Shown piece after piece: positions 122 to 43,462 of a DNA stretch of 64,000 bases (positions within the stretch are counted from its first letter, which is position 1; each line of letters begins with the position of its first letter). The notes under the pieces were generated by a model, which was given only the letters and a program-made list of their open reading frames with translations, was not told the origin of the DNA and did no database searches. The DNA is taken from positions 4,588,001 to 4,652,000 of the forward strand of contig CDRNST010000008.1 of assembly GCA_977016875.1 (NCBI GenBank). The letters run 5' to 3'. The position numbers and the translations under genes are program-made. The stretch is from Pavona decussata (lineage: Eukaryota).

Positions 122-1318
122 CCCAACTGCGTTGCTGAAGTGGTGACGTTCGAGAAGGAGCAGAAAATTATCATTATTTCAAACAGGAAAGTTGAGAAAG
201 GAGAAGAGGTACGCAAACGTTTATTTCCCCAACTGAAATATTTTAAGCGTTTGGAGAGGACACGTCGGTGAATTTGTCTGACCATTCGACCGCAAAGCAC
301 TAGAAATTCCAGTTGGCAAGTGAACTGGAACTATTTCGGAAACTGTGGTGTAGCTCTAGAGTCCTTGCTCGATATCCCTTAAACGAAAAACCGACCAAGT
401 TGAGAGTTTTAGAAATTAAGAATGCCAAACATTTTTTTGGGTGTAGATAACGAAATATGGGCCCGTCATTCTGGGTCTTTCGGAAAGCCGGCTAACCGTT
501 ATGTTGCCCCAAATTTCAGTTTGTGTGATGTTCTACGCGCAGTCCTTGTTGGTCCAATGGATGGTGCCGCCAAAAGCGCGAAGGCTGCACCAAAAGCCAG
601 TGTAATTATTTTTAATTCGGGTGTTCTCCGGTATTTTGTAAATAATCGAGTTCAGCTGTGTTCTTTTCGTGAGCCTGTTTATGGGCCACTTTTCTTCCCA
701 GGAAGCTAGCGCACTTGTCTTAAGCACCTCGCGAATGCACGGAAGGCCGCCTCCACCAGTCTGCAAAGCATAGCACGTTCACGCGCGAGTATTGTTCGCG
801 GAGTTTGCGCACTCGTCAACTAACTTGATGAAAACAGCCTCTACTGACCTAAGAATTCAGACGACACTTTCATTGATATTTCTTTTGGAATTGCGAATAT
901 ACACCGACCTCCCGGGCTACTGAAGTGTAGCCACCTGCACGTGTCAGTACACGCGTGTGCAGCCGAATGCCTTTACACGCGCGAGATCTCGTCGAGTTCT
1001 CTCCTACTCTGCAGACTGGCGCGTCCCGACTAAACTCGCTCAGAAGTGTTCGGCAGTAGGATTGCAAACGCCCCCTTTCCCATGTTTACATCTACGCTGA
1101 AAAGAGTGATATCAGCACAAATTTTCTTTTATGATCATCTGGGTTAGTGCGGTCCTGAGAAGGATTGTTTGAGGACCTTTGAGGTGACATTGACTGACAT
1201 TCATGTTACAACTCTTTTCTTGCAGCTCACTTACGACTACAAGTTTGACTTCGAAGATGAAGAAAACAAGATTCCATGTTTGTGCGGCGCACTTAACTGC
1301 CGAAAATGGATGAATTAA
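122..1318 (+). CDS. KMT2C: 3' end (last two coding exons: 122-208, 1226-1318) of a KMT2C/KMT2D (MLL3/4, trr-type) H3K4 methyltransferase; SET C-terminus and post-SET
   Basis: The exons splice in phase 0 with canonical AG/GT to give [29 protein letters not shown]|[30 protein letters not shown]. This closely matches the recalled KMT2C/D C-terminus ([10 protein letters not shown]...YDYKFDFED...IPCHCGA.NCRKWMN). The rest of the gene lies upstream of the window. KMT2C versus KMT2D orthology cannot be resolved from these two exons. Confidence 0.93.
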
Positions 1319-1731
1319 GACCAGGAAATACGCACAGTTTTTCACTGCAATTTATTTAATCGTTATTTATTTAACGCGAATGCTCTACACTTTTTGGCCG
1401 GTACAAATCCAGAATTTTCTTACACATAAACACAGCAAGAAATATTATATTATCTGATGTATAATTAATCATGTTTTAGTTCGCTTTTTTTCTCCAGTTC
1501 GTAGAGGTCAATTTGTCATGTCAGACATTTCACATAGGAATAAGTACATTTCATTCGGAAATATTGAATTCGCTAGGTTTTTGTTTCTTCTTTGCTTATT
1601 GTAAAGTGTCATGATAGTCTCGAAATATGTCCAGAGTTTTTAAAAATTTTACACGCACCAAATGCGTGTCTCATCAAATGTAGTGTATATAATGCTTTAT
1701 TGGCTGAAGTGAGGTTTTATTGAATACGGAG

Positions 1732-1741
1732 AATAAATAAA
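1732..1741 (+). terminator. Likely polyadenylation signal of the KMT2C/D gene (overlapping AATAAA x2)
   Basis: AATAAATAAA about 415 nt after the TAA stop, at the end of an AT-rich 3' UTR-like stretch. Confidence 0.55.
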
Positions 1742-4700
1742 ATATGCATATTGTGGTTACAATTTTCAGTGAGTGCAGTTAGAGAATTTCTTTGTGCTTA
1801 ACCTGTTTGATGAATCTTCTCTTGTGGCTCCAGTAGTATTATAAACGAAGGAAGCAATTAATCCTTCTTTGTTATAAATGTCTTGAACTTGGCGTCAGGA
1901 AAGCGTGCTATTTACGTTAATTAGAAACGAGCTTTTATTAGATCCTCTAGGTAGCTCAGTAAGCGGGAGCTCGTTATGGTTTGGCGGGGAAACTAGTTTC
2001 AGAAACAATGTGTTGTTTTCAAAACACGAACATGTTAATTCCAAAGTCCGTGAACTGTATTCTGGACTTAACTGAATTTCGTAGGAAAAAATCTACCTGT
2101 TAAGTTTTTAGCGGGTGGGTTTGTAAATTACGCGCCCCCTCTTTTAACATATAAACGCTTATTAGTGAATGAGCGAGTGGGAGGGGTAGTACTCTCCGCG
2201 CATTTGATCCGTATTTTTGAATCGCACGACTCAGAGTTGACGAATTGATCTGGTTGTTCTCCTGCCGCGCGCGGACGGTCCCTCGTAACTCGGTTATCCT
2301 GATTTGAAATGGTCCGAGTATTTTAAGTTCATTCATATCGGTGTTAGGAGGCTTCATGCTAATGATTTTGTTGGTGGCGAAAAGCGAACGAAACCAGCTC
2401 TTCGCGCAACAAAGGATTGGACGTGTGATAAGAACTGCTAAAAACTGGTGTTATTTGGCGGCTTATGTAAAGCAGGGACAAGCGCGGCACTCGAAAAACA
2501 TGTCTTGGTCGTGTGCAGGTGTTAGTGCAAAAATGATCGAGCGATATTTGGCGTTCCATAATCTGGGCGCCATATTGACGAAAGGAGATGTTGTGGAAGA
2601 CAAGTTGTCGCCACACATTTATCTCGATTAGTTTTGACAAAACAAATGACAAAGGTGGCAGAAATGTTGTCTTGGCAATTGTTGTTTTGTTGTAAGTAAT
2701 TAATTAGGCAGTTCTACTTCTTGGACTGTGAACATAACAACATCGAGGACATCTTCGTTTGCATTTGTCAGGGAACAAATTTGCTGTGTTCTCACGGCAG
2801 GGTATCAACACAGTCGGACAACGGACGCCACGTTGGAAGTACTGCATTTTTATTTTGTTCCGCTCAACTGTCCGCTCAAGAGAAGTGTTAATGAGCAAGC
2901 GGATCGACACTTGATGTGTCAAAGGTGTGCGCCTATGGGAGGTTTGACTGTGTTTTATATCGGCCATACATTTTTATTACATGTATCCGTGTTCGAACTT
3001 GTGTTGATACAGGATGCCATCTGCTAGAAACATCTCGTATGAATACCGATTTAAGTTTCCTTTGCTACAGCGAGCTGGAAAATAGTTTTTATGCCCGCGC
3101 GGTTTTTGCTTCTTTTTTAAACTTTAACAAAACGTGTTTACGGTTGAACTCCATCAAATTTTTATGTTCCTCAGTGGACGCCTTTGTGTGATCTAGTGTA
3201 GTCACCCGCAGCTAGATTGAAACACAAATATCACAATTCACTTCTTATCACAATGTCGAAATGAAAATGAAAATTATCCTTTTCGACAAAAAGGCGTGTG
3301 TCTAAGCAGCAAAATTTGTTGAAAGATTTCCCCGACCACTACTTGAGTATCGACCTCGCTAGTACAGTACCGGCGGCAGGCTTTCTCTTGCGTGATTGTC
3401 CTCGAAAACACGCGAAATACTATTTCCTATTCAACCTGCGAACATCTGGCTTTACTCTTCTTTTTCGTTCAACCGAAGATTTTAACCGCGGGCGATGCTA
3501 CTTTGTATTCTTTCAGTTTTGGCACACTCTCCGTACCTACTTAAAATGTCAATACTAATAAAAGTAATATAATTGTTTTTGTTGTTGCACTTGTCCAATT
3601 GCTAAGAGCAAAATGTTTGGAGCGGTTTTATTTGGCGAATTTGGAGTTTTGCATGAGATCAGGTTTTTTTTTCTTTTTTTTTTTGTGGCTCAGGGAGACT
3701 GATATTTTCCGAGTTTGTGCGAAACAATAACAATATGCTTTTATTTTAACAAAAACTCAACAACTTACAGGTTCATATTTTGAAATTAGATGCAATAAAT
3801 TTTCACAAAAATGCTTCTACAGGTACACAATTTTTTCTGAATCTTAAAAAAAGATAATAATAAAAGCATTTAATTCCCTGCAGCATGTTGAACTTTTTCT
3901 CAAGGCTGCTGTTGACAGTGTTGTGTTTCATTTTTTATCCGAAGTGACAGCGAGTTAGTTTTTTTTGAGGTGCCACTTCTCTTTTCAATACCCCTTAGGA
4001 AATGCAAGACAATCACATGCTGGAAATTCAATGCTTTTATTTGCGGTTGGTAAACTCGTAGGAAGAAAACTACCTTTGAAAACGTGACATGTACCTGCCT
4101 CTAGCCTAACACCTAGGACCGATCCAGGTCGCGCTCTTTCACTTTAGGACAGCGAGTGGTCCTGTACTTACTTTGTACATAAGCCGGAAGGAGGGGGGTA
4201 GGGAACGTTTGCGCAACATTTTACTCTTATTAGTCGTGGTCACGCTACACACTTTCAGCTGGGCGAAAATCATTTACCTTGGGCAAACTCACTCGTGTAA
4301 ATAAAAGGCCATACCGGTGAAGTCAACATCTGGGTTTCTCTTATACAAATTTAAATTTCACATCCGCGTAATGGAAGTTTTGGCAAGTAAATAGACTCGC
4401 TAACAGCACTATGCTCGGAGGCAAAGCCCATCAAAGAGAAGTTTTCTTCTTATATAAGTTTCCTGCTACTTCTCAAGTGCGAGTAGTATTCTTTTAAATA
4501 TTCTCTTTTTTTGTCTTGGAAACAACACCATCTGTCCGAACGCGTGGTATGGGTTCTTTGATCATTTTTGTGCGACTGTTTTACTTTAGACAACACGCGC
4601 TGCTTGCAAAATTAGTTTTGCAGAGTGATTATGATCCCTCCTCTGTCATCAACGCATTTGCCGACAAGGGCCTATTCGATAAGCTACCTTGGGAGGCTGT

Positions 4701-5412
4701 CAAGGGAAAAATTCCCTGGGGTAATTTTGGTCACAAGATTCGGTTTCCTTAGGGAAACTGTCAACAAGTCAAGTTTTCCTGTAGGCCAAAAGTGTGTGGT
4801 GTGACCACGGCCATTGACTCTAAAATATTGACAAAAGGATATTTTTTGCCCTCGGAAACGAAAACGGAATGAAAGAAAATGAGCAGGCCCTTTAACATCG
4901 CGCGAAAACTTTCTTTTAAAAAGGATGCGGTTTTGTAGTTGTTGTTGTTTCTTTGAAACGAAAGCATTTCAAGAAACTGAGAAGAATGAGGCGCTTAGTT
5001 GATTAGAATTTGCATTGTTGAATGCAAAAAGCGTGCTATGCATGGACTGCATGCCGAGGGCCCCTTTGGGTTTTCCTGAAAGGACAAAGCTATCTGAAAA
5101 GCGGAAACATTCACTTCCGGTGTACGTGGTGAAAAGAAAACAATACTGGAGATGAGAAGACAGCTTGTCGTTCTCTCTGACGACTGTATACGACTTGGTG
5201 CGAGTCAAACACGTACATCGCCGCTTTTTATAAAACGCTTTTCGAGATATTGAAAGATACTTGTCGGTTAGCCGCTCGACAAAAACCCGTACACGCAAAA
5301 AAAAAAAAAAAAAAATAAAATAGATATATGACTCCAAAGGAAATTGAGAAGTCTTTATTGCGCAAAAAAGGTATCCCCCCGCCCGCTGCCAGGTGCGGCA
5401 AGTTGATCCTCC

Positions 5413-5505
5413 CAGACAAATTCTTAGTATCCCATCGGGCGCGACGAAAACATGGCCGATTGCAGACATACTCGAATTCCAGACAGACAAACAAGGCGGC
5501 CAGAC
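5413..5505 (+). promoter_or_regulatory. Cluster of Smad-binding elements (CAGAC x5) with GC-rich elements, upstream of the MH1-PHD gene
   Basis: CAGAC at 5413, 5463, 5480, 5484 and 5501, with GGCGCG near 5438 and GGCGGC at 5495. Motif match only. Confidence 0.45.
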
Positions 5506-5900
5506 GTTAGTATTCGGAAGCATCATTATACCTCCCAGAAAAGCCATTATACGAGACAAATTTGACTACTTGAGTCTCAGTTCAGCGCGAATAAGGTTTG
5601 CGTGACTTGCTGTTTCACGGGGTCGCTGCCGTATTTATATTTTATACAATTTCGTTTAAAAGAGACCGCTACTGATAACACGCGGGTCACTTCTATTTGT
5701 GTTTCGCACCGTACAAAAGTAAATGAATTCAGTTCGAATTTATGCCTTGATATAAATAGAACAAGCATTTCAGAAAGGAGATTGAAAGGTCGTAATACCG
5801 CTTGAAAAATTTGGTTTGTCAAGGAGGTATTTACATTTAACTGAATTTTAAATTTAAATTTAGTTTTTTTTTCTCGGCAATTTTCAAAGCAATCCCAGCG

Positions 5901-5935
<35 letters not shown>

Positions 5936-6632
5936 GGAAGGCGTGGGTGGCGGATACATGCATGCTTTGAATTTGACAAGCTACTTGTATTCTTTTACTG
6001 CCCGACAGTTTAAAACCATCCGCAGTGAAAAATGTAATTTATTCGTAGTTTTTTTTTTAATAAACGGGACACATGTCAATCTCATTTAAGCGTTATTTTG
6101 AACTTATACGTGATAAATCTTACTTGAAAAGGTTGTAGAAATGTTAAAAAGTGGGTGTTCAACACAAACGTTTTTGACAGAATACACACTCCGGAACGTT
6201 CTCGACATTCGTGAACGTGAAAACGTGTCCCAACTCACCCTAACAGATCTGAGTTTCACTAAAGCAAATACCCGGGAATGTTTTATTTGAACAAACGTCG
6301 CTGGAAAGGTGTCAACTTCGTTAATGTCCTTAGCAAAAATTTTCGTGTCCTTTGCCTCGAAATTAACAACACACCAAAATACATTGTTTACCATTACCCG
6401 TCAATCAAAGTGATTGACAAGAACGCGTGTAAGAAATAATTGCTATCACCTTTTGAGGGATGTGATTGGACGAGAGGCTTGCTATGACATGACCGTACTG
6501 ATTCAATCTGAACCCTGTACTGCGCATATGGAGTTTGTTTGGGAAGGAACGTTTATGGGTGTTTGGCGGATTGATTCTTCTTGAAATTTTAAACTATCTA
6601 TGATGAAATGAGGACCATAGAAGGGGTCGGGA

Positions 6633-7080
6633 ATGGAAAAAAGCTTAGTGCAATCGGCTTCCCCCAAACGAGGACCGAGCTCCGCCGATGCGAACCTAAG
6701 CATCGTGTTGAATCTCATGTGTCATACAACTTGCCATCGCCAAGGAGGCGAAACTGAGAAATTCGCAAAGAGAGCCATCGAATCGCTGGTGAAAAAACTG
6801 AGAAAGAAGTCTGAAGAGCTAGACTCTTTGATCACCGCGGTCACAAGTAAAGGATCCAAGTCATCAAAATGTGTCACGATTCAGAGAACTTTAGATGGCA
6901 GACTTCAAGTTTGCGAGCGCAAGGGCTTTCCACATGTGATTTACGCTCGCTTGTGGCGATGGCCAGACATTCAAAAAATGGAGATGAAACATTTGGACTT
7001 TTGCCGATACGGCTATGATCTTAAGTACGAGAGTGTTTGTGTCAATCCGTACCATTATGAAAGAATTCGCAGTCCGGCAG
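6633..7080 (+). CDS. Exon 1: Smad4/Medea-type MH1 domain, copy 1
   Basis: Translation includes [22 protein letters not shown]...[35 protein letters not shown]...FC...[11 protein letters not shown]. The Co-Smad signature, beta-hairpin R/Q/K residues and Zn ligands (C,C,C,H) are intact. The ATG is in good context (ggaATGG), there is an in-frame TAG at 6618, and the donor is CAG|GTAAG (phase 1). Confidence 0.93.
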
Positions 7081-13000: not shown

Positions 13001-16000
13001 ATTTAGTAGGTTTGTCCTTAACCGTCTGAGAAATGTTATTCAAAAAACATTTTCCTGTTACAGTTGGACAAAATCTCCTTAGATTTGTTATGAAAAGACT
13101 GTCACATTCTGTTGAAAAAGATGCAAACAAACCCATGGAAGAATTTTAAAATGTAACTAGAGTTTCTAGTGCTGTTTGCATTTCTCATTTTTGGTTAGTA
13201 ACACTTTTCCTGTTCACTTGGAGATTCATAGACACTGTATTAAGTGTTTAGGTGAAATAAAAAGAGCCTTATTATAACCTATCAGGGAAGTGGCTAGGAT
13301 GGCAAAGAAATCATGAGTTAACCTTAAGACCTGCTCAATGGTATGGGGAGGGGGGGGGTCAAATTTCATATACATTTAATCATTTAAAGGTGATCAATTC
13401 CTTTATTCTCATGAGAATACAGTGTAGTTATATTGTAACGAGAAATTACACTTAACAGGTTTAACATGTAATGGGGCCTCAACCTCAACCTGGGTGTCAT
13501 CCCAGGTCATGTGGTTTATGACTGCCATTGAAGAATATATTTTTTCTCTCTATACAGCTGCAACTCTCTCAGTCAAAACATCATCACCAAATTGTGACAA
13601 ATGTGCCTTATCTGTGTTGAAAGAAAGTCCTCCCCAACCAACGACAACATATGAACAGCCTAAATATCTAGAGGCAGGGCCTAGCAACTCTTTGCCAGGA
13701 GCCAGCAACATTCCTTGCTCGGCAGATCCCTGCCCAATCATAGTGAGGAATTTACTTTGGCATGCTGTCCTCCGACATCAGGGTGCTGATGCCGAGAGCT
13801 TTAGTCGAAGGGCTATTGAATCCTTGGTGAAGAAACTCAAGAAAAAATTTTATGAGCTGGACTCGTTAATTGTGGCTATCACCTCAAAGGGACGGCAACC
13901 CTCAAAATGTGTCACTGTTCAAAGGACAATGGATGGGAGATTACAAGTCGGGGATAAGAAGGACTTTCCTCATGTTATTTATGCACGGCTTTGGAGGTGG
14001 CCGGATGTGCACAAGATGGAAATGCGACATAAAGAGTTTTGTCAGAATGGTTATGATACAAAGCATGAAAAAGTCTGTGTTAACCCATACCATTATGAAA
14101 GAGTTCAACCACCAGGTATGTTAAACTTATATTAAATTTGTCTCGGGTGGTGGCCAGCTGTCTTGTGAGAGCAGTCCTGAAAAAGGTTGGAGTTATCAAA
14201 GGAATTCCAAAATACTTTTCATTTTTCCTTATTTGTGATTTCATTCCTTTATATTACTTTTACAGTTATCTGTCAGTAGACTGTTAGTACAGATTTGTGG
14301 GGAAAGTGTTCTTCAGTTAAACCGAAAGTTGAATTTTAAGTTTTGTCGCAACAATGATAGTACATGTAGAATTGGATATTAAGCAAATCACCTGGCTTGT
14401 TAATTCTGTTTCAAAGTTTTCGTCTTGTCACACTGTTAAAAAGAACACTCGGGCTTTTTTTAAATTTACAAGAACTTCATTCCAGTTCACTTACGCACTT
14501 ATGGAAATAAAAAAAAATTATGTATGCAATTTTCAATTTTGAGCAAGTTCATCTTAACCGTTTATGAGCATCCTTACTTTGCACACAATTCATGCCAGGA
14601 ATTAAAATGTAAACAGATATAACTCTTCAGGTGATTGTTTAAATAGTTTTTAAGTAAGATAAGTAAGAGAGTATCTTGGTAGTAACTTTGGAGTTGAGTG
14701 TGTGAAATTTGAATTGTTAGAACTGTTTTTCAACTCACTTCCCATCAAATTTTGCCTATTAACACCTTGGTTGTATTGGAGTTGCAAGACAAGTGTTGAA
14801 CTAGAAAGGATGGCTCAGTTTATGTAACTCTATAGCTGGACTGACTCTACACAAGTATTGTAACACAAAAAGTTTGTCTCCCAAGCAATCCATTTGCACT
14901 ATTTTTTAAACCATTAGCTAATAAGTCATTTGTTTTTCAAATTTGAATTCATGATGTTTTCTTTCTGTTTAATAGATTGGTTTAGGGCTTCCTTGTATGG
15001 GAATGCACACAAGTCGCATGGTATGTCAAATTTGCCTTGATAAATGAAAATTTTAACTTATTCCTGTATATATATAGCCATAATATTAATAATTTTAAAC
15101 CAATGAGGTCACGACATGGAAGAGTGCTTCTGATTTGGTAATAAATCTCATGTTGTACATTGCTTTAAGGTACACGTTTGTAGTCTATAAGGGAGGTTAA
15201 TGACACTATGTTCAAAAGATGATGTTAGGTGGCAAAAGTGAATGGTAACCTTGAGGCTTTGCAAGACAGATATTAGGTGGCAAAAGTGAATGGTAACCTT
15301 GAGGCTTTGCAAGACAGATGTTAGGTGGCATGAATGGAAACCTTGAGGCTTTTTTAGGTGGCAAAAGTGAATGGTAACCTTGAGACTTTGCAAGAGAGTA
15401 AGGCTAGTGCTTTCCTCTGCGAGCAATTGACTTCATGGCCTTTTTAAACACACGACTAAGACCTGGAGTTTTGTGACTGTGAGCCAGCTGAGAGCCTGAT
15501 AATTTTTTTAGCTTTAAAGTATTGCTGTAATAAACTAGTTCTTTCCTGAGACTTTCAGTGTAGCAAGAAGGAGAATCATATCTTACTAAGTTAATTTTTC
15601 AAATGGCCTTAGACAGTTCTGGGTTCAAAGTAATTGGGAATCGAAGTGTGTTTGACAAGAAAAAAGGACTTCCAAGACAATACCATTCAAACAGTGAGAC
15701 TACAAGCTTAAGACCTGTGAAATTACACCAAAATCTGGCAAGACTGGCATATGTTTTATTATTATTAGACCATACGCCAGGTGTTTCTCCATATGACATA
15801 TCAAGAATGAATAAAAAGTGGACTTTTCACCACAGAAAATTCCTTGAATTTTTTTATTTGACATTTTGTGTTTTTAAACTTAAATGTGTTTTGCTTTTGA
15901 TTTTGTGTGACATATTTTGCTAATTAATATTTTTTCCTGTACTTAAAACTCAAGCAGAAGCTGAAAACAGCCGTAAAAGTGATGAGGTAAGTTATTTAAT

Positions 16001-19000
16001 ATGAAAATCAGTTTTAGTTTTAATTAATTTATAGCTGACAGGAAATGAAAGGAACAGACAAAATAGTATATTTGTTCCATTTTCATCACTGAATAAGGTT
16101 GGATTTTTGTTTGTTAGCTACATTTTACCTCAGTTTCAGGTTTACAGTGATTTCAGTGATTTGCTGTATTCAGTGGTCACATGCTTTAGACTTTAACCTC
16201 CTTATTTTTCAAGGGTGTTTATATTACATTTGGTAAAATTGTCAAAGTAGAATTCTTTAGCGGGCCTTGAAGTGAAATTTATCACATCTGTAAATTAAAA
16301 TTCTTTACACTTGTCTATTCCAGCATTAGTGTTTTTTCCTTATTCAAGTTCATTCAATCCCTACAGAGGTCAGTTGGCATTTAGTTTGAGTCGACATGCT
16401 AACAACTTAAGGCTCTTCCATTGACAGTTTAGATTTACAAAGTTCCTTAATTTATTCCTAAGAATATAACAAATTTGGGTCTAAAAATATGATGATTAAA
16501 TTCTTGGCCTGTCATCTCTGAGACAAAATTACTCCTCACTTAATCCAAACAGATGTGCTCGTTTAGATTGGGATCCTGTTTTTCTAATCTTTTCAGTAGT
16601 ATTTGATTGTTAGTTTCCCCTTCCTGTAGGCTACTAGTTGGCCGGTTACCCCTCCAGTTAAATAGTCAACTATACATTATACATGAACCTAGTTTAATGG
16701 CCCTAGCTCCCACGAGTCTCCTGTGGCTCAGTAGTAGAGCATCCAAACTAGTAAATATTGGAAGGTCTTAGGTTCGACTCTTGATAGGAGCACTCTGATT
16801 TTTTCAGAGTATGCCAGTGTGTCTCACTGAATAATACATCGTTCTCTTATACACCATCTGTTCTCATGTTGTTTCATCAGGACTCCAATGGCGGCTCGCT
16901 GTCAAATGAAAATGACGTTGGTGAGAAAAACAGTTGCTACTGTACACACAGCAGTTCTTCTCAAGGAAACAGGAAGAGACAAGAACCTCAAGATGCAAGT
17001 TATTTCAACTCCAGGTTAAAACGGAAGCCTGATTTTGAGGGAGACAGGTATACTTTCAGTAGATTCTTAGGATGGGTAAATGCTCTTGCTCAATAATACT
17101 TTTCCTCTTGATCATTGATACATTCACTTATAAATACATGTACAGTACTCCTATTAAAACCTCACCACAGCGTGCAACTACGATGGTGGTATTTTTCTCC
17201 CAGTTGCTGATAACCTGGACTTCTTTTTGGATCTGAGTTTGGATAGGGGTGTGCTGCCCAGGCTCTGAAACCCTGACCCTATTTATGACAAAAATGTATA
17301 CAGTCGCACCTCTATTAAGCGGCCACCTATTAAGCAGCCACTCTACATTAAGCGGCCACTTTCCAAAGTCCCGAATTATTCATTTGTCAGTAAAGTGCTG
17401 TATTCGATACCTCTATTTAACGGCCAACCTCTATTAAGCGGCCAGTTTTCAAAGTCCCCAGGGTGGCCGCTTAATAGAGGTCCGACTGTACTTTCCCTTT
17501 GTGAACTGTTTAGAGGATAGATTTTATTATTCCCTGTTTAAACAATTACAAAGGTATATGCACTGCAATGTACCTGTATATAGCAAATGCTAATCGTAGG
17601 TTGACTTAAAAAGAAAAAGAGAAAAGTAGTAGTAGAAAAATATACGAATATTAAGTAACTAGCCAATAATGATTCAGTTGGAATAAAACAAAACAAAACA
17701 AAACAAACATGCTGTTTAAAACAGCACTATATTAATGGGGTCCTTTCAAAATATTAAAATTCGGCTTGAATGTGAGGTCTAGAGGACACAAACAACAGGA
17801 ATGAATAAACATGATTATTTAGTTTCCTTTGTTTGTGTCCTCTAAGCCTTATTGTAAAGTTGAATTTTAATATATGGAAAGGAGCCTTCATGAATTTGGA
17901 TGCTGGATTAAAAAAATATCAGGGAAAATTGTCAAGATACAATTGTACGGAAAATATTTCCTATGTACCATCTCTACAGACCTGTCTATGACATCTTGAA
18001 GCCAAAAACTGATACCTTATATTGATAACCATGGGCGGCACATTTCCACACAGGTTATGTATGGGCGTACCCCCCACCCTCCTTCCAGACTTTTTACCTT
18101 GGGTTAAAGAGTTTCTTTTTGTACTGACAGGGCAATGTCAGCTGCTGCATCATCAGTGAGTTATTCTAGCGACAGCGATGAAGATATTGACATTGAAACA
18201 GACTCACCCAAGAGAGTGAAGGTGAATTCATACAGGACTTAGTTTATTGAGATTTTATTCTGATGATAAGCCAATAGAACTTTGATTCAATTTGACCTTA
18301 GGTTGAAACATTCCTTTTTCTACAAAAAAAAAAAAATTAAGTCGCACTATGAGCCTAAGTGACCCACATGGCCAGAGCTTAACTTAGCTTCTGTAGCATG
18401 AAGCAACTACATTTAGCAGTCTGGATGGGATGCTACCTAGTCCATCACAGGGTTATCCCTAGCAGTATGTTGCCGGTAACCATTTATACACCTGGGTGAA
18501 GAGAGACAATGTGGAGCAAAGTTTCTTGTCTAAGGAAACAATACAGCAATTAAGAGTCCAATCTAGCCTTGAACCACTGGCCTTCAGATCTTCCAACCGT
18601 CCGATTAAACAAAAGTCTGTCATGCTAATCACTATACCACTGTGCGTCCTTTCTTTCCTAAGCCATGCTGTATTCTTAGATAGCTATGAAAGTTGTCAGA
18701 GCTTGTGCCTGTTGGTATCTTTGTATGAAGTGCTTACAGTGTACACAATTTCACTTTGTTTATTCCCATGTTCAGCACTGCGATGCTTACATTCATTTGA
18801 CACTTAATTGCTTGTTTTTATAATAAATTAGTTAATTTAATGTTATGCACAATTCGCTGTTGTCTAATTAGCATGTTATTAAACACTTTGTGGTTTAGCT
18901 TTCTCCAAGTGAAACATTGAGTGAGAAAACTGGTCCTAAAACGGATGAGAGGTTAAGCAATTCCCACAGCAATTCAAGAAGGTAAGTTGACTTTAAACTT

Positions 19001-22000
19001 AATTTTGGATATAAACAAATCAGATTTTTTTAAATTTTCTTTTGGTCCAGATCATGGTTATGAATCTGAGACAAAATAAAAAATCAGTCACCTCCTGGTT
19101 TGAAAATTATCTAAAACAAAATAATTTAAACAACAACTTAGATATGATCATGAATTTAAACTGGCTGAAGTTCGGTGGTAAAGGTGAGATTCTGATCTTG
19201 TTTTTTTGGGAATAAATTAGTAACTTCACCTGAATTACAGGTGTAGTTTGTACAGCAAGAGAAACAGGAAACAGATGAAGTAACAGTAATGTTTCCATCA
19301 GTTGTTGCCATGCAATAAGTTCAGGTTCCCAACAAAAATCAAGTTCATTTTCTGTACAAAAATCACATCTCACAACAAATTTTAAGTTTCACAGAATATA
19401 TTAAGACTAGCGGTTCCTAACAGAAGTGAAGTGCTGCAGGCAGATGCTCTTAGCAGTGAAGAGTACTGTAGCATTTGTTTGGCTAAACAGACACTTTTAC
19501 TTGTACAGAATACAATACATTTCCAAAGCATAGATATCAAGACTTAGATGTGTGTATATCCCTTCCTGCAATCATCGTGATAAGCTTTATCTAATCTCGG
19601 TTTTACTAACTATCTCCGTAAATGTTAGTACAGCTGCATGCGGTAACTTTAAAATAACAATATTTTAAAGAATGCCCTAAAAATTACAGTTATAATAAAT
19701 AATCAAAAATCTTGTAACACATATATACAGTGATTGATTCAAATAAAGGTAGTTTATAGTTCCAGTTGAAGTGGTTGCCATCTCTGTGAACAAGAAAATC
19801 ACTGAATCTGCTAAATCGTACATAGATCGGTCATGAAGCCAATGATATTAAACACCATCTGCATTATCTCCTTAAACACTGTACTTATTCAGTTGCTCCA
19901 CTTTACAAAATCCATAATATTATGAATTGATAAGAGAAATATCCTCTAAAACAAAAGATGGCAAAACAAGAATAAAATGTAACAAAGCATACTTCCTCAG
20001 TTTATTTGTCTTTGTTGGTTTTGGACCACATATTAATTTGAAACAATTTGGTGCATTAGCCACTGACAACATTTGTTTAGTTTGGTTTACTTGTAACCAC
20101 AAAACGGTGTGCTGACAACCCAGTTATGTGCTCAGCTATAGTTCAATTGTCTACCTCCTGGCTAACTAATAAACACAATGTGCATTAAATAAGAGAAGAT
20201 CATGTTTAAAATAAATCTTTTTAGAAGAACTTGGAGAATGAGTGCCTTTAATTTTGTAATTTATAGTGATCAAGATTGTTCATAAATTGCTGGGTGTATC
20301 TGAGATATTGTCTTGGCTCTGTGTGAATTCTTTTTTTTCTTGTTTTTGTTTGTTTGTTTCAGAGTACGCTGTGCTTTGTGCAATTGTGTGAACAACAGTC
20401 AGTTGGGGCAAGGTGATCTGATATGTTTTGGAAGAATATCTGGCTTCCCGAGACACTCAACAAGTCCACAGCAATTTCAACAGTTTCCGTCAGGTCACCG
20501 AAATACACATTACCCTGCTGTTAGTAGTTCACTTTCTTCCTATGGCAGGGGAAGCCCCCATGATGACGAATACCAAGACCACAGTCCTTATTCCTTGAAA
20601 TACAGGGCCAGTCAAGGGGAAGGCCCAGCCATCAGGTACTCAGATTTACAGGCTTTGTTAACTTGTTTGTAGCTATGTTCATAATTTTGAGCCTTTCCTG
20701 ACTAAAACTGAACAGTAGTAATTTTTTGTAATACGTCATTTGCGAAGAGTTTGCAGTTTACCATAACAGGCATGTGGCATTCGATTTGTTTTCAAGAGTA
20801 CCACTGTCTTGTAGGTTTTGTATGCATGATATTCTGGTTCAAAATTGTTTGAAAGATGTTATAAAGAACTTGTAGATTCAGAGGTGTTTGTAGTGACAAC
20901 ATAATCACTGCAGCAGCTGGTTCATACACTGCACCAGCAAATCAGCTGATTGGTCTCATCAGTAGTTTAAAATTTTAATATTAATTTTAATTATTTTAAT
21001 ATTTTAATTGATTTTTATTTTATTTTAATCAGTATTTTAATATTTTATTTAAAAATAAAGTTGTCATTATTATTACTATCAATTAAAATTTTCATGTCCT
21101 GCTTGTATTAACACACAGATCACTAACAGTAGATGTAATAAGATATGACAACTCCAATGTGCTTTAGTGTGATCCAGGTGTTCAAAATGTAAAGCTAACC
21201 ATAGTATTAACCAGGGCCCCATTGTTCAAAGCTTAACCTAGGATTTGTGTGAACTTTGGTTACTGTAAAAGTTGTTTAACAATTTAGTTAAGAGAGTTTT
21301 CCATACAATGTCTGCAGTTCAGTTTTGAATTAGACTGTCCTGATAACCTTAAAATGAGTGAGATGAAAAGCTTGGTTAACTGTTAATCGGCTTTGACAAA
21401 CAATTAGGGTCAGAGATAATGAACGATGCATATAAGAAGTGCCTAATTTATTTATTGAAACTTCAGGCCAAGGAGCCCTGATGGAAAATCTAATGTGGTG
21501 AACAGTTCCAGTAACAACAGGCTCACACCTGCTCCTCAAGAAGACATTTCCAATGTTGGCTTCAGAGAGGAGCCTGAGCTGGTTGATCTGTGTGACATGT
21601 CTGGTCACATATGGGTCCATGAGAGATGTGCGGCATGGACACTGGCTTCCATTGCTACCAAGTCTGCAGTGGAATTTACTGTTGAGTTAACAAATCAGAT
21701 TCTCTCAAAGGTACAACACTCATAATGCCAAGTGATTGAGATAGGATTATGTAATGTTCAAAAAACGAGCAGAGTGTTTAAAAAACGTTTTAGACCCAAT
21801 AAAACACGTGCTACCAGTTTTTTGAATGGCTTCAAAAACATTCCTGGAAAAGCGTGTGTCAAGAGAGTTCATAACAATTATGCTTTTGTGAACTAAAATT
21901 AGCATACGAGAAAAACATTTAACACTGCATACTAATAAGGAGGAGGTTTTATCGGGTTTTAAAACCACTGCACGTGATGTTTTATCGACCATTTCATAGG

Positions 22001-25000
22001 TCAATAGGCTTATAAATTATTAATGAGTTTTTGAAGTAATGTTTAAAAAACAAGCAGGATTGTTTTACCTGGTTTAAAACAGCTGCGAGTTTTTTGAACA
22101 GCTTCAAAAACATTCCTGGAAAAGCATGTGTCGATAGAGTTCATAACAGTTATGCCTAAATTGTGAACGTTGGAAATTAGCATACGAGAAAAACACCGCA
22201 TACTAATTAGGATTGTTTTATCAGCTGATAAAGCACCACATACTAATAAGGAGGGGGTTTATCAATGTAAAGTCACTGTACTGCATGAGTTTTGAAGTCA
22301 ACTTAATGCTCATAGCCCAAATGAAAGCTTGAATAAGAAAAATATTTTTTACTACATGTATTTAATGCAATTTAACTAGCCACTTGAAATATGGTGGGAT
22401 AATTATCCTCACAATCAGTGATGTTAGTTGGCAGCTGTAACCTCCTCTTAAAAGGTATAATGTGCCTTTGTTGTTGTGAGTTTTTACCTTGAGCCTGTCA
22501 TTTCAATTTGCCATCTTGTTTTCTTCAGCCCCATTTGTCTGGACCCAGTTCATTGCCCCTTTACTTTATTGATGCAAAGTGGTCCATTGGCCTTTTCCAG
22601 TGTTCCATTTGTTAAATAGTTGTGATCTTCTTTGCAGAAGTGCAGTTTTTGTGGCCGTTTTGGTGCTAGTGTTGTATGTGAGATGTCTGACTGCGGGAGG
22701 ATATACCACTACCCATGCGCAATGGTTGCAAGGGCCTATCAGGTGAGAATAAACAGATTAGAAACTAATTCAAAACTCCGGGGTAAGTTTTGGGTTTAAG
22801 GGAAAGCCAGGTTAATTTAATTTTCAGGTACAAAAAAGGTATGGGGTGTTTTGGGGTTTAGTTTTAGCCTGTGAGGATTTTTTGGGGTGTTAAAGATTAG
22901 CTTCATTTGCACCCACTACCACTGGGCCTGGGGAATCATCCCAAGATTATCCATGTACGTACCATGATCACTGGATAATTAGTTTTGATTAGCTTAGCTG
23001 CCATGGGATATCAGTCATTATTAAAAACTGAATCATTGTATAATGCAATTCGAGGGATTTGATTGCCTTAGCGGCCATGGTATATGAGCCATTATACCAT
23101 GGCCGAGAAATGGCGACCATAAAATTGTCTGCTGGTTGTTCTTGCCCAGCGAAATCAGTAAGATCTAGCAATATTTCGTGATTGTTTTTAATAAAACAAT
23201 TATTCCACTTGCGCTTGTTGGATGTGAGATGATTATAGCCAACTCGGCGCTACGCGTCTTGTTGGGTATCTATTATCTCATATCCAATGCGTGCTTGTGG
23301 AATAATATTGTTAATTATACCATGCCCAAGAAATAGCGACCATTAAATTGTCCTCTGGTCTTTCTTGCAAAATGAAATCAGCAAGGTCTAGCAAAATTTC
23401 TTGGTTGTTTTAATAAAACAATTATCCTGTTGGCACTTGTTGGATATGGGATAATCGTAGCCAACTTGATGCTATGTCCTAGTTGACTATTTTTATCTAT
23501 CATCTCATATCCAACGCATGCTCATGGAATAATTGTCAAGTATAATCAGAAACTAATTATTTTTAATTACCTTTTCTTTTTGATAACAGGACATAAAAAC
23601 AATGAAACTTTACTGTGTTAGTCATGATGACATTATAAGAAGAGTAGGTGAGTTTTCCCGCATGTTAACATTTCCATTCCTAAATGATAGGAGACAAAAA
23701 GATATCAGTAAAATAGGTTTGCTAAAATATCGAAAGTACTGTGCATGACTAAATAAGGTTTTGTTTGCAATTTACAGCATTTTGTGACAGATGCCATCAG
23801 GGAGGAGAATTATCACAGCTGTTACTGTGCACCAGATGCAACTGCCATTATCATAGTTACTGTTGCTCTCCTCCTGTGCGTGCTACAGAGACTGTAAGGG
23901 TGGGCTGGGAATGTGCACAGTGCAAATCCTGCCAGTTTTGCAGGTAAAGTTCAACACATGTTATTAATGCTTTAAGTTGTTTCTCACAATATCACATGAT
24001 CTTGAAGGCCAATGTTGCTGTGTGCTCAAGAGGGTGTCGGTGAACAACTGTATTTTTGTTTTGTTTGAAGAAGAATTGAGTTCTTGCTAGCCACATGTAT
24101 ACAGCAAAGGCTGCACTTGGCACAAAATGACTGTTTATTCTCTGTTAAAACGTGTTGCAGGGTTCACATGATCATAGAAAGATCATGGAATTTGAAATTT
24201 GTATTCGTTAGATCTGAAAAAAGTACTGGTAATGGAAGTTTGAAAAATTGTTTCCCAAGGGTCATGGAAAAGACAAAAATCATTACTATCAGTTTTTTAC
24301 CAAAGCTGTGTTGGAGTATTGTCAAAAAAATAAAGAAATTTGGCAAACTTTTGTGTGAAGCATCAAAATGTCAGTGGAGCATTTCACTCCTTTTGTCAAT
24401 TTTGAGGTCATGAAATCATCATGAAAGGTTCTCTCCCAGTTCAGTGTGAACCATGTGTTGTCGCCATCTTCTTTTGACCATTGATGGTCTGTCATTAGTC
24501 AAACTTTGCAACCTGGAGCTATTGACAAGAAACAAATTTGGTTTATGAGTTAACTGTGTCAATGCTAAAAGATTAACGTAAGCCAAGGTTGCAGTGCTGC
24601 ATGCCATACATTTCAGGATAAACTTTCAGTTTAATTTAATAATAATTATTAGTTTGAAATAACTTTCTCAAAATTGTTTTGTTTTAGGGTGTGTTTCTAG
24701 TTTCGTATTGTTGATGACTGGAATAAAATTAATTTATAATCGTGTAATGAATTCTGCAGACAATCTTCTCCCAAAGACAAGCTGTTAATATGCAGCAGCT
24801 GTGACAAAGGTTACCATCCACTGTGTACAGTACCTATCACCAATTCAACAGAAAAGTTAGGCTGGAAGTGTGAGGTTTGTAACCTTTTCAAAGGTCTCAT
24901 TGTTCCATTTGATGTGCCATGTGCCACATGAATTTTGTTGGTAATTTTGGCAGTGAAAACCTGTAATTATCAAGTGAATGTTAATTGATCATTCATTTAC

Positions 25001-26486
25001 TGTGGCAGTTGATGAAATTGTCCTCCATTTTAATAGTGATGTTGAGTTCACAGTAGATTATGGTCCTCATTAATGATAAGGGAACTGGGAACCCATGCTT
25101 GCTGCCTACATCTCTTATTATATTGCTTGCAGCTACAAAACATTTTGAGTGGGATGCAAGTGACTAAGTTGTGTGATACTTTAACACCAAAGTAAAGTTG
25201 CATCCATCATTTAACAGTATGTTCATTACCTGATTGTGTCTGTGCATTCAGATTTGTTTCCACTAACTGTTACATGGTCATGTTATAATTATTTTTATCC
25301 TGCTGTGACTTGGGGGAAAATGGAAGGACGTTGATTTGCTTCTGATCAGTGCAAGATACTTGATAATTAATTTAATACATTTTTACTTCCAAACAGAAAT
25401 GCCGTCAGTGCAGACAGTGCAGAACAAAAAAGACATCACGATGGCACATTGATTATACCTTGTGTGATGTGTGTTACCAAAACAAACATAAGACAAATCG
25501 ATGTCCGATGTGTAATACCGAGCAGGGCAATCATAGAGTGGTGCAGTGTGACTCCTGCAGTAGGTGGGTGTAGGCTTACATTTGAGGCCAAATCAAATTA
25601 TCAAGCCTGTTTTTTTTTTTATCACTGTTAAGTATGTGATGCCAAAAACATACCAAAAACATGCTAGTATTTTGCTTGATTGACAAGTTATCAGACAATT
25701 TTCAACTGGACACTCAAAAAGATTTGAAAAGGATATTTCATCCTTTTCACCCTGGAGACTTTTCAAACAACATTTCAAAACATTTACATGACGTATATGC
25801 CTTTATTTTGTTTCAGGTGGATTCATACAATGTGTGACAGCATCACGGATGACATTTACAGGAAACTAGAGAGAGATCGCAGCATTATCTACGTATGCAA
25901 GCTTTGCAGAGATGAAGTTGAAAAAATTAAAAAGGAGTGCAGAAGAGAGGTAAGTATTAATGGACAAGCTGACAGTGCATTAATGGATTGTGACTTTGTG
26001 AAGGTGTTGGGTGGGTGGGGTGGGTAGGGTTACAGAGAAGGGGATGGGGATGGGGATGGGGAAAGGAAAATTAAGTAATTCTGTTGACAGGAACTCACTC
26101 TTAAGAGTTATTCTTAAAATTTAGCGTGGTACATATGGGTCAAATATGTGATTCACACTCTCCCATTACCAGCACTCTTTCACTCCATGCATCTGTATAT
26201 GGTTGTTTAGTAATATACAGTCCTGACCTTCTGTATCTGTTGTTTGCAGATGAAAACAGATCCTGTGGAATTGGAGGAGGTATCACCAGTCACTACTATG
26301 GTGTTAGCACAAGAAATGCACAAGGGACACAACACCAAGCAAATCTCTAGCCTCACCACCAGCATGGCAACTACACCGTGTTCAATGACGTGGATGACGT
26401 CTGAGCCTGTCCAGTGGTCCAGATTAAGGATGACATATTCTTTTGAGTATTTCATTATGAAGCAGTATGGTAAAGTGTTACTTTAG
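6633..26486 (+). CDS. Multi-exon gene for a tandem Smad4-like MH1-MH1 plus KMT2C-type ePHD/PHD/PHD/PHD protein (~957 aa; no MH2, no SET)
   Basis: Fifteen exons, all GT-AG and phase-compatible: 6633-7080, 13558-14115, 15958-15986, 16881-17047, 18131-18221, 18899-18981, 20363-20635, 21467-21710, 22638-22742, 23590-23647, 23778-23943, 24760-24874, 25397-25563, 25817-25949, 26250-26486. The total is 2874 nt (958 codons) with no internal stop. The MH1 and PHD exons are secure. The small linker exons 3-6 and the last exon rest on splice signals and phase only. Confidence 0.8.
7758..8137. promoter_or_regulatory. Intronic Smad-binding element cluster (7 CAGAC/GTCTG in ~170 bp plus palindromic GTCTAGAC)
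   Basis: CAGAC at 7758 and 7770; GTCTG at 7840, 7882, 7902, 7912 and 7924; GTCTAGAC at 8130-8137. Motif match only. Confidence 0.5.
10443..10832. mobile_element. TTAA-flanked MITE (Kolobok-like AG...CT termini)
   Basis: TTAA-AGGGGAAGTATCATG ... CATGATACTTCCCCT-TTAA, a perfect 15-bp terminal inverted repeat (TIR) with no coding capacity. Confidence 0.8.
12636..13098 (-). mobile_element. Degenerate 3' fragment of a CR1/L2-like LINE
   Basis: The minus strand reads [40 protein letters not shown], resembling a CR1-type ORF2 C-terminus. It is followed by a T-rich 3' UTR and an ATAAAT/A-rich tail. Confidence 0.55.
13558..14115 (+). CDS. Exon 2: linker plus Smad4-type MH1 domain, copy 2
   Basis: Translation includes [22 protein letters not shown]...[35 protein letters not shown]...FC...[11 protein letters not shown]. 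Acceptor is ttttctctctatacag and donor is CAG|GTATG, giving a symmetric phase 1-1 exon of 558 nt. Confidence 0.93.
15221..15396. repeat. 48-bp minisatellite, about 3.5 copies
   Basis: Unit GAT(G/A)TTAGGTGGCAAAAGTGAATGGTAACCTTGAGGCTTTGCAAGACA at 15221 and 15269, truncated at 15317, and again near 15354. Confidence 0.9.
16683..16860 (+). mobile_element. tRNA-derived SINE-like repeat (copy A)
   Basis: A-box-like TGGCTCAGTAGTAGAGC and B-box GGTTCGACTC. A homologous copy lies at 41045-41240. Confidence 0.65.
17299..17490. mobile_element. TA-flanked Tc1/mariner(pogo)-type MITE
   Basis: TA-CAGTCGCACCTCTATTAAGCGGCCACC ... GGTGGCCGCTTAATAGAGGTCCGACTG-TA, with internal repeats of CTATTAAGCGGCCA. Confidence 0.85.
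17733..17890. repeat. Palindromic (hairpin) MITE-like repeat
   Basis: Nested inverted arms: CCTTTC..ATATTAAAATTCGGCTT / AAGTTGAATTTTAATAT..GAAAGG and AGAGGACACAAACAA / TTGTTTGTGTCCTCT. Confidence 0.6.
18340..18646 (-). mobile_element. tRNA-derived SINE with a conserved central domain
   Basis: On the minus strand, a tRNA-like head (GTGGTATAGTGATTAGC...GGTTCAAGGC) is followed by TTTCCTTAGACAAGAAACTTTGCTCCACATTGTCTCTCTTCACCCAGGTGTATAAATGG, a core resembling CORE-type metazoan SINEs. Confidence 0.7.
20363..25949 (+). CDS. Exons 7-14: KMT2C-like N-terminal ePHD, PHD, PHD, Zn-knuckle and PHD cluster
   Basis: ePHD: [14 protein letters not shown]...WVHERCAAW...[28 protein letters not shown]...LYCVSH. 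PHD: CDRC..CTRC..HSYC..GWECAQC. PHD: [23 protein letters not shown]. Knuckle: CRQC..WH..CDVCYQ. PHD: [23 protein letters not shown]. Order and motifs follow the recalled KMT2C N-terminus (CAFCYCGEKSSLGQGDL...WAHHRC...YHYPCA...CDKGYH...RWVHLECD). Confidence 0.9.
21760..22265. repeat. Dispersed repeat with an internal tandem duplication; a third copy lies at about 38345-38590
   Basis: TTTTTGAA..GCTTCAAAAACATTCCTGGAAAAGC.TGTGTC.A.AGAGTTCATAACA...AATTAGCATACGAGAAAAACA occurs near 21819, 22091 and 38357. Confidence 0.85.
23020..23540. repeat. Tandemly duplicated palindromic dispersed repeat
   Basis: Two ~220-bp copies (about 23093-23315 and 23318-23540), each with an inverted core ATTATTCCAC.....TTGGAT..GAGAT ... 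ATCTCATATCCAA....GTGGAATAAT. Confidence 0.75.

Positions 26487-32996: not shown

Positions 32997-43462
<10,466 letters not shown>

Follow-up and report, generated by a model that had tools for sequence, protein, structure and literature searches.

A Smad4-MH1/KMT2C-PHD fusion gene beside KMT2C/D in the coral Pavona decussata, probably an ancient partial tandem duplicate

The region analyzed in this work is a window of 64,000 nucleotides of the Pavona decussata genome (contig CDRNST010000008.1, here C8, positions 4,588,001 to 4,652,000), in which the 3' end of a KMT2C/D gene is followed on the same (+) strand by a second gene, referred to here as MH1-PHD. The penultimate coding exon of KMT2C/D, at 122..211, encodes part of the SET domain (tblastn to residues 4988-5017 of the coral KMT2C/D protein P0392, 97% identity), and the last coding exon, at 1223..1318, encodes the post-SET end of the protein (1223-1315; residues 5016-5046, 94% identity), which terminates in CRKWMN before a stop codon at 1316-1318 in the ORF listing. 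The MH1-PHD gene starts with an ATG at 6633, 5.3 kb beyond this stop, and ends with its own stop codon at 26484-26486. It encodes a protein of about 960 aa with the domain order MH1-MH1-ePHD-PHD-PHD-PHD, a spacer between the MH1 domains and the extended PHD (ePHD) and a conserved tail, and has neither an MH2 nor a SET domain. The same arrangement of KMT2C/D followed by MH1-PHD is found on the contig of the second haplotype (C200), which is 97-99% identical. Exon matches, Pfam searches and the second haplotype thus confirm the first-pass annotation, which had placed the KMT2C/D stop 5.3 kb upstream of a same-strand chimera carrying the N-terminal module of KMT2C. Its end coordinate, 25949, marks the donor site of the final PHD exon, and the gene has one further exon.

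The exons of MH1-PHD, all on the + strand, were assembled by hand and checked against RNA joints. Exon 1 (6633..7080) contains the start codon and the first Smad4-type MH1 domain (Pfam MH1, 1.3e-38), ends in a phase-1 donor and shows 95-97% identity to the Acropora and Montipora orthologues; exon 2 (13558..14115) encodes a linker and the second MH1 domain (1.1e-34), and its phase-1 donor coincides in position with that of intron 1 in the Smad4 gene of this genome. The spacer is encoded by five small exons, most of them placed by orthologue alignment in addition to RNA. These are an exon at 14976..15019 (DWFRASLYG...; joint 15019>15957 in runs X1, X4, and X8), a micro-exon of 28 nt at 15957..15984 (GT..AG joints 15019>15957 and 15984>16879 in three runs), an exon at 16879..17042 (RNA contig pieces and joint 17042>18126), an acidic and serine-rich exon at 18126..18221 (contig pieces and joints), and an exon at 18899..18980 which ends in phase 2 directly before the PHD cluster (contig pieces 18900-18980, which continue into 20362-20636 within the same contigs). 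Within the cluster, exon A (20363..20635; spliced contigs and orthologue alignment) encodes the first zinc knuckle of the ePHD (C-x2-C-N-C ... GQGDL) and a variable linker, exon B (21467..21710) the middle of the ePHD (WVHERCAAW; splice sites and 39% identity to the neighbor's exon where the two are colinear), exon C (22638..22742) its zinc finger (...YHYPCA; Pfam zf-HC5HC2H, 8.8e-08), with 58% identity to the neighbor's colinear exon and both flanking phase-0 introns shared, and exon Q (23590..23647) the end of the ePHD, again placed by shared phase-0 and phase-1 introns. Exon D (23778..23943) is the counterpart of MLL3/4 PHD2 (Pfam PHD, 1.7e-07; 41% identity to the neighbor's PHD2 exon; phmmer ranking) and exon E (24760..24874) that of PHD3, KMT2D/MLL3 PHD2/3 being the top PDB match of the two fingers. 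The last PHD finger is split by an extra phase-2 intron into exon F (25397..25563; 35% identity over 65 aa to the neighbor's single PHD4 exon) and exon G (25817..25949; orthologue alignment and splice sites). The last exon (26250..26486; orthologue alignment) encodes the C-terminal tail (EP..WSRL...YSFEY) and the stop. A five-sequence search also gave this tail a weak match (E=0.005) to coral KMT2C/D, in the region right behind PHD4.

The gene is expressed in Pavona, where spliced contigs from three studies link the spacer exons to exon A through five GT..AG introns (15019 to ~20362). The link from MH1 exon 2 to exon A rests on the length of the contigs, on the presence of the MH1 exon in the same runs and on orthologous contigs, among which the Acropora contig L020 (4327 nt) contains an unbroken ORF of 962 codons with the same architecture. 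The metatranscriptome run X13 gave only unspliced and more divergent pieces.

Both MH1 copies are closest to Smad4. They share 64% identity with the genome's own Smad4 as against 51% with R-Smads, carry a Smad4-like N-terminal motif and have in common with Smad4 a phase-1 intron after YHYER, and Smad4 also gives the best MH1 matches outside the family. Both copies have kept the zinc ligands of Smad4 and, in the DNA-binding hairpin, its R-x-Q...K residues; the hairpin tips, however, are CE and GD instead of the AG of Smad4, a pair fixed across Cnidaria. The protein also differs from Smad4 in the tandem arrangement of its MH1 domains and in having neither linker phospho-sites nor an MH2: the MH2 domain (PF03166) has six matches in the genome, none of them on contig C8, and the orthologues lack it likewise. 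To our knowledge, MH1 domains elsewhere are found only in Smads and NFI-type factors.

On sequence grounds the PHD module is a paralogue of PHD cluster 1 of KMT2C/D. It follows the layout of that cluster (PDB 9atn and 2ysm), an extended PHD and then three PHD fingers with the same zinc-ligand pattern, and matches KMT2C/D cluster 1 at 1e-33 to 1e-49 as against 1e-19 to 1e-28 for cluster 2. A maximum likelihood tree of the triple-PHD module, from which EukProt P0178 (third finger not delimited) and P0179 (truncated sequence) were left out, separates MH1-PHD together with KMT2C/D cluster 1 from cluster 2 with support of 100/100. All five introns inside the neighbor's cluster 1 are common to MH1-PHD in both position and phase (0,0,1,2,0), and the introns flanking the cluster agree in phase. 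The module differs from cluster 1 in two extra introns and in a very long branch (1.55-1.7 changes per site), and the tree groups it with cluster 1 only at the level of the whole group. The rest of KMT2C/D is missing from the gene: Pfam detects only MH1, PHD, and zf-HC5HC2H in the orthologue P0002, with no SET/post-SET, FYR, HMG, or second PHD cluster, the gene ends at 26486, and no KMT2C/D similarity was found in the interval from 26.0 to 43 kb.

The residues by which this cluster would engage its partner have changed. In MLL4, ASXL is contacted by the acidic residues D257, E272, D285, and E292 of PHD2/3 (MLL4 numbering), together with K274 and V290 (PMC11161652). Across 18 KMT2C/D sequences the four acidic positions are mostly conserved as such, the last two (D285 and E292) being acidic in 18/18, and the upstream neighbor has E, D, D, and D. 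The MH1-PHD gene of the window instead has S, Q, K, and S, keeps K274 and replaces V290 by I. In the anthozoan orthologues all four positions are non-acidic, two of them being basic in most corals. The replacement of all four acidic groove residues suggests that the copy has acquired a new function.

Orthologues of 930-990 aa with MH1, ePHD, and PHD domains are present in Acropora, Montipora, Porites, Pocillopora, Stylophora, Orbicella, Oculina, Nematostella, Hydra, and Hydractinia, and a shorter model of 744 aa with the same domains in Actinostola. The window gene fits this cnidarian MH1-MH1-PHD orthogroup by exon-by-exon alignment to P0002 and P0168 and by the C-terminal WSRL..YSFEY motif of the family alignment. 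Purifying selection on the gene is strong from corals to Hydra; dN/dS values against Acropora are 0.02 (MH1), 0.08 (PHD), and 0.06 (tail). Given orthologues from Acropora to Hydra, MH1-PHD is an old cnidarian family and not a local rearrangement. The family is represented in NCBI by automatic models only, named as uncharacterized, KMT2C-like or Smad4-like; LOC5509135 (Nematostella), LOC114947054 (Acropora millepora), LOC100199160 (Hydra), and the "histone-lysine N-methyltransferase 2C-like" predictions of Pocillopora and Stylophora are orthologues that agree in length, in the order of their domains and in the C-terminal motif. Literature searches on the fusion gene and its locus names returned nothing relevant, P0002 had no usable match in the ESM Atlas, and no MH1+PHD protein was found outside Cnidaria among proteins of 529-1683 aa. 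In Porites, Pocillopora, Orbicella, Nematostella, and Actinostola, too, MH1-PHD is preceded on its own strand, at a distance of 3-8 kb, by a KMT2C/D gene whose product terminates in CRKWMN, so that the adjacency seen in Pavona recurs in five further hexacorallian genera. It is absent in Hydractinia and was not detected in Hydra over a distance of 10 kb; the tandem origin is therefore deduced from Hexacorallia only.

Three other accounts of the locus have to be weighed against a duplication. A locus fission had been the alternative offered by the first-pass annotation, in which KMT2C/D would have been stripped of the PHD cluster at its N terminus, with the PHDs supplied in trans by the downstream gene. 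In Drosophila the MLL3/4 ancestor is split into trr (the SET half) and Lpt/Cmi (the PHD half), and the coral gene resembles Lpt/Cmi in being a separate, SET-less gene with an MLL3/4-type PHD cluster. Beyond this precedent and the adjacency itself nothing favors fission, and a reading of 120 kb upstream refutes it, because the SET-bearing gene retains both of its own PHD clusters. This gene is colinear by tblastn with residues 14-5046 of the 5046-aa P0392; its 3' exons, including those at 122-211 and 1223-1315, align to residues 4460-5046, covering the FYR and SET/post-SET regions and the CRKWMN end, while cluster 1 (C8:4555852-4560496) and cluster 2 (4561791-4564044) are colinear with residues 141-1000, and their exons show 84-97% identity to coral KMT2C/D. 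The upstream gene also has every ASXL-contact residue lost from the downstream copy. Unlike the situation in Drosophila, the SET-bearing gene of the coral is thus intact and the extra gene is a duplicate and not a fragment, which carries cluster 1 only, has no HMG box and adds MH1 domains; fission is so improbable as to be negligible. Derivation of the cluster from another family (DPF, KAT6, NSD, or KMT2A/B), with KMT2C/D adjacent by chance, is hardly more credible. Single exons do give weak NSD-type Pfam PHD matches, and DPF3 and KAT6 appear lower in the PDB list, but KMT2D/MLL3 PHD2/3 ranks at 2.6e-21 as against 1.8e-12 for DPF3. In a phmmer search of 1.84 billion representatives with the PHD2 exon, moreover, all full-length matches after the orthologues end in ..KWMN (nearly all in CRKWMN) and are KMT2C/D. 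The separation from cluster 2 and the five shared introns argue the same way, and homology, introns and an adjacency kept in six hexacorallian genera together oppose chance, as had been anticipated at the outset. It is also very improbable, if less extremely so, that the gene is a recent lineage-specific duplicate, a pseudogene or an annotation merging separate MH1 and PHD genes. The models of Acropora digitifera and A. cervicornis split or shorten it (159, 637, and 769 aa), and in Pavona the link across the whole gene is pieced together from several contigs; against this stand the full architecture in Hydra and Hydractinia, the unbroken Acropora contig, open frames throughout with the low dN/dS values given above, and spliced contigs that run from the spacer into exon A.

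We consider it probable that MH1-PHD, a separate and expressed gene, arose by an ancient partial tandem duplication of KMT2C/D, and it may act through the adaptor mechanism proposed below. The earlier suggestion of a truncated tandem KMT2C duplication that captured Smad4 MH1 exons is supported by the homology ranking, tree, introns, and adjacency, but not as a local rearrangement of one locus. We infer that the 5' part of KMT2C/D was duplicated in tandem at the DNA level, with an end just past cluster 1, and that the duplicate became fused with a copied first coding exon of Smad4, which then doubled. These events would have preceded the split of Anthozoa and Hydrozoa, and the copy would have been kept beside its parent gene in Hexacorallia. 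A duplication older than the cnidarian-bilaterian split with loss in Bilateria, or an adjacency held by shared regulation and not as a tandem relic, we regard as unlikely. PHD2 identity to cnidarian (41%) and bilaterian (38-42%) KMT2C/D is about equal and the tree does not group the module with the cnidarian cluster 1, as an older origin would have it; long branches may equally explain the similar distances, the AU test does not reject a grouping specific to cnidarians (p=0.31), and the lack of MH1+PHD proteins outside Cnidaria speaks against it. Retention of the microsynteny ever since Actiniaria and Scleractinia separated would fit shared regulation. Judged from the tree and the AU test, the date of the duplication is compatible with either side of the cnidarian-bilaterian split.

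With respect to function, the MH1 domains are predicted from their sequence to bind Smad-type DNA elements, and since the protein has no MH2 this binding would occur without the formation of receptor-driven Smad trimers. The remodeled PHD2/3 groove is predicted to no longer accommodate the basic helix of ASXL to which MLL3/4 binds. Taken together, these two properties would let the protein act at Smad sites as a chromatin adaptor or competitor that is independent of signaling and whose partner differs from that of KMT2C/D.

MH1-PHD belongs to an old and conserved gene family that has so far gone unstudied; it combines a tandem MH1 without MH2 with a chromatin-reader module and is the product of neither fission nor recent rearrangement. 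It offers a clean example of a partial duplicate which still adjoins its parent since the divergence of sea anemones and stony corals, and two natural experiments, one in the reading of Smad DNA elements outside the receptor-Smad pathway and one in the rebuilding of the MLL3/4 PHD2/3 groove following duplication. BMP signaling patterns the body axis in these animals. As a tentative and doubtful extension, the gene could be a cnidarian receptor-independent reader of Smad elements, made of a Smad4 MH1 exon plus repurposed KMT2C/D PHDs and located beside KMT2C/D since the Actiniaria-Scleractinia split. Such a reader may go back to the eumetazoan ancestor and have been lost in Bilateria, and at BMP/TGF-beta target sites it may act as a competitor or as a mark set in advance.

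The KMT2C/D gene upstream of the MH1-PHD fusion gene was examined in the 120 kb 5' of the window and is complete. P0392, a 5046-aa coral KMT2C/D protein from a 15.9-kb contig, is colinear with it from residue 14 (C8:4552763, C8 being the contig that carries the window at 4588001-4652000) to residue 5046 (window position 1315). The alignment takes in the first N-terminal PHD cluster (cluster 1; residues 141-556 of P0392, C8:4555852-4560496), the second (cluster 2; residues 761-1000, C8:4561791-4564044), long Q-rich exons, the C-terminal extended PHD, the FYR regions and SET. The gene ends inside the window on the + strand, with a SET-domain exon encoded at 122-211, the post-SET end (...[11 protein letters not shown]) at 1223-1315 and the stop at 1316-1318, and there were no N runs in the 184 kb read. 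The first-pass annotation had proposed either fission of KMT2C/D, so that the window gene would supply the PHD cluster in trans as in Drosophila, or a partial tandem duplication that acquired Smad4 MH1 exons. As the SET-bearing upstream gene keeps both of its own N-terminal clusters, fission is ruled out; the layout described there, a KMT2C/D end followed by a chimeric gene on the same strand, was correct save for one further exon (26250-26486). The whole region is repeated on contig C200 (G000:C200:1225427-1278930) at 97-99% identity and equal spacing. We take this contig to be the other haplotype, meaning that both haplotypes are in the assembly and that copy counts in the genome are doubled here. 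Just 5' of the last KMT2C/D exon lies a 46-73 bp element (1129-1201) with 75-93% identical copies on both strands of dozens of contigs, probably a short interspersed or MITE-like repeat.

The MH1-PHD gene starts with the ATG at 6633 on the + strand. Exon 1 (6633-7080) and exon 2 (13558-14115) each encode a whole MH1 domain (Pfam 1.3e-38 and 1.1e-34, respectively), and are followed on the same strand by a run of PHD and extended-PHD zinc-finger exons from 20363 to 25949 and by the last exon at 26250-26486. Searched on its own with phmmer, the PHD2 exon (23765-23947) retrieved the 962-aa Acropora orthologue P0002, composed of two MH1 domains, an extended PHD (zf-HC5HC2H) and three PHD fingers. 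P0002 is encoded by a single open frame without interruption (L020:774-3662) in a 4327-nt Logan contig from an Acropora-type run; the contig is evidently a cDNA since the genomic gene has 17 introns. It should be said that P0002 begins with three residues added in error by the gene caller (GTG start), the true start being the ATG matching window 6633. The gene model was obtained by mapping P0002 and a Montipora orthologue exon by exon onto the window, with about 25 residues on each side of candidate splice sites used for junction scoring; window exons were searched and compared singly, and database proteins (P0002, P0392, the orthologue P0168 and others) stood in for full-length products.

Splicing in this organism was seen in contigs of 2002, 957 and 2119 nt, from three runs of three studies, which skip the introns 15019>15957, 15984>16879, 17042>18126, 18221>18899 and 18980>20362. 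The small spacer exons that follow MH1 exon 2 are thus spliced together with the first PHD exon in a single RNA. Clean GT..AG ends were found at four of these five introns; the fourth (18221>18899) has an ambiguous end, with one letter between the sides, and was read as an exon start at 18899 plus a C>A difference. The 2002-nt contig extends about 1.1 kb 5' of the exon at 14976, as much as the two MH1 exons together with a short leader would occupy, and the same runs contain 82-89% of the words in MH1 exon 2; we infer that the MH1 exons are joined to the spacer and PHD exons in the transcript. Intronic stretches 17241-17840 and 18441-18640 showed contig depths of hundreds to thousands with many odd joints in all runs, and are expressed repeat families outside the gene model. 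A tRNA-like sequence in another intron (16717-16792, +; Rfam RF00005, 36.3 bits, E 2e-05), with summed contig depth of 3,000 to 100,000 in the bin 16641-16840 in all four runs, points to a tRNA gene or to a SINE family derived from a tRNA.

Five lines of evidence, from homology ranking, cluster match, phylogeny, structures and exon organization, agree in pointing to KMT2C/D cluster 1 as the source of the PHD module. Among the best 150 matches to the PHD2 exon, out of 1.84 billion representatives, all full-length non-orthologues end in ..KWMN (nearly all CRKWMN) and carry a SET motif; among ten whose records were consulted are KMT2C or KMT2D of Strigamia, Anneissia, Branchiostoma, Pleurodeles and Pelobates. 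Against 18 KMT2C/D proteins, the triple-PHD part of P0002 scored 1e-33 to 1e-49 with cluster 1 and 1e-19 to 1e-28 with cluster 2. A maximum likelihood tree (46 rows, 192 columns, LG+C20) separated cluster 2 from cluster 1 plus MH1-PHD with 100/100 support. The best single-module PDB matches were KMT2D PHD2/3 (9atn) and MLL3 (2ysm) at 2.6e-21, the next family being DPF3 (1.8e-12). The best match to each PHD exon of the window is the exon at the colinear position in the neighbour's cluster 1 (35-58% identity), and all five introns inside that cluster are common to the MH1-PHD gene in position and phase: before CxxCGRFGAS (phase 0), before DIK (phase 0), before PHD2 (phase 1), between PHD2 and PHD3 (phase 2) and between PHD3 and PHD4 (phase 0). 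The cluster-flanking introns are of equal phase (2 and 0) and lie within a few codons. Introns common to both genes argue for duplication at the DNA level rather than a retrocopy. The MH1-PHD gene has two additional introns, in the extended-PHD linker and inside PHD4; the latter (25563/25817) has AGGTGG at donor and acceptor junctions alike, a very short repeat compatible with intron gain by small tandem duplication.

The MH1 exons resemble those of Smad4, which in this genome is on contig C177 (MH1 and a split MH2), with R-Smads on C93 and C199. MH1 copy 1 shares 64% of its residues with the Smad4 exon, against 51% with the R-Smad exons, and has the Smad4 N-terminal motif (S.DA.LSIV..LMCH...RQGGE); a phase-1 donor ends the MH1 exons at the Smad4 position, exactly in copy 2 and one codon later in copy 1.

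A gene on the + strand ending in CRKWMN was found 5' of the MH1-PHD gene, in the same orientation, in Porites lutea (3.9 kb), Pocillopora verrucosa (4.6 kb), Orbicella faveolata (5.0 kb), Nematostella vectensis (2.9 kb) and Actinostola (about 8 kb). This recurring order upholds, for Hexacorallia, the proposal that the adjacency is not due to chance. In Hydractinia the upstream neighbour is HAT1, and in Hydra there was no KMT2C-like gene within 10 kb, a pattern that fits a tandem origin followed by separation in hydrozoans. The duplication took place no later than the split between anthozoans and hydrozoans and, as hydrozoans have both MH1 copies, that of the MH1 exon is old as well. In the tree the MH1-PHD sequences sit on long branches (1.55 in anthozoans, longer in hydrozoans), with no supported placement inside the cluster-1 group; neither monophyly of the module (AU p=0.48) nor a clade with cnidarian cluster 1 (AU p=0.31) was rejected. 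Downstream, a minus-strand PhyH-domain gene follows in all three of Porites, Pocillopora and Orbicella (L015, L018, L025); in the window its place is taken by a likely retroelement remnant (38895-39724, +; open frames with reverse-transcriptase-like sequence) and SOD2, the first exon of which (mitochondrial Mn-superoxide dismutase, [16 protein letters not shown]...) is at 43838-44092 (+). These, like exons of an enoyl-CoA hydratase/HIBCH-like gene at about 55100-58400 (-), were recognised by eye.

The same architecture, in 930-990 aa, is present in the corals Acropora (four species), Montipora (two), Porites lutea, Pocillopora (three), Stylophora, Orbicella and Oculina, in the sea anemones Nematostella (LOC5509135) and Actinostola (a shorter 744-aa model), in the hydrozoans Hydra (LOC100199160) and Hydractinia, and in three EukProt entries. 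Among proteins of 529-1683 aa no MH1 plus PHD protein was returned from outside Cnidaria, the next matches being ordinary Smad4. Public annotation already has the gene, as automatic models only, named "uncharacterized protein", "histone-lysine N-methyltransferase 2C-like" or "Mothers against decapentaplegic-like protein 4"; no description of the protein or its loci was found in a full-text library that is incomplete, so one may exist elsewhere. In the family alignment the MH1 domains are near-invariant, including the hairpins [13 protein letters not shown] and RLQVG[DE][KR]KDFPHV, and zinc ligands are conserved in all fingers. The C-terminal tail (26250-26483 and orthologues) had no Pfam match, and its motif EP..WSRL...YSFEY is conserved from corals to Hydra; a weak similarity (E 0.005, five-sequence search) links the first 44 residues of the tail to the stretch that directly follows PHD4 in coral KMT2C/D. 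Against Acropora cDNA (dS about 1-1.5), dN/dS was 0.02 in each MH1 domain, 0.14 in the spacer, 0.24 in linker exon A, 0.08 in PHD exons B-G and 0.06 in the tail, values which indicate that the gene is functional and strongly constrained.

The MLL3/4 PHD2/3 module binds ASXL1-3 through a basic helix of the latter, which sits in a groove lined by D257, E272, D285 and E292, with K274 and V290 also required (PMC11161652). In 18 KMT2C/D sequences these four positions are mostly acidic (D285 and E292 in 18/18), and all four are acidic in the three cnidarian KMT2C/D sequences and in the neighbour (E, D, D, D). The window gene has S, Q, K, S and most other coral orthologues S, Q, K, R, with no acidic residue at any of the four in anthozoan MH1-PHD orthologues. 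Judged by these residues, the copy has lost the electrostatic basis of ASXL binding yet is under strong constraint, which we read as a new binding specificity of its PHD2/3 module. With two intact MH1 domains, no MH2 and an altered groove, our best guess is that the protein would work at Smad DNA elements independently of signal, as an adaptor or a competitor.
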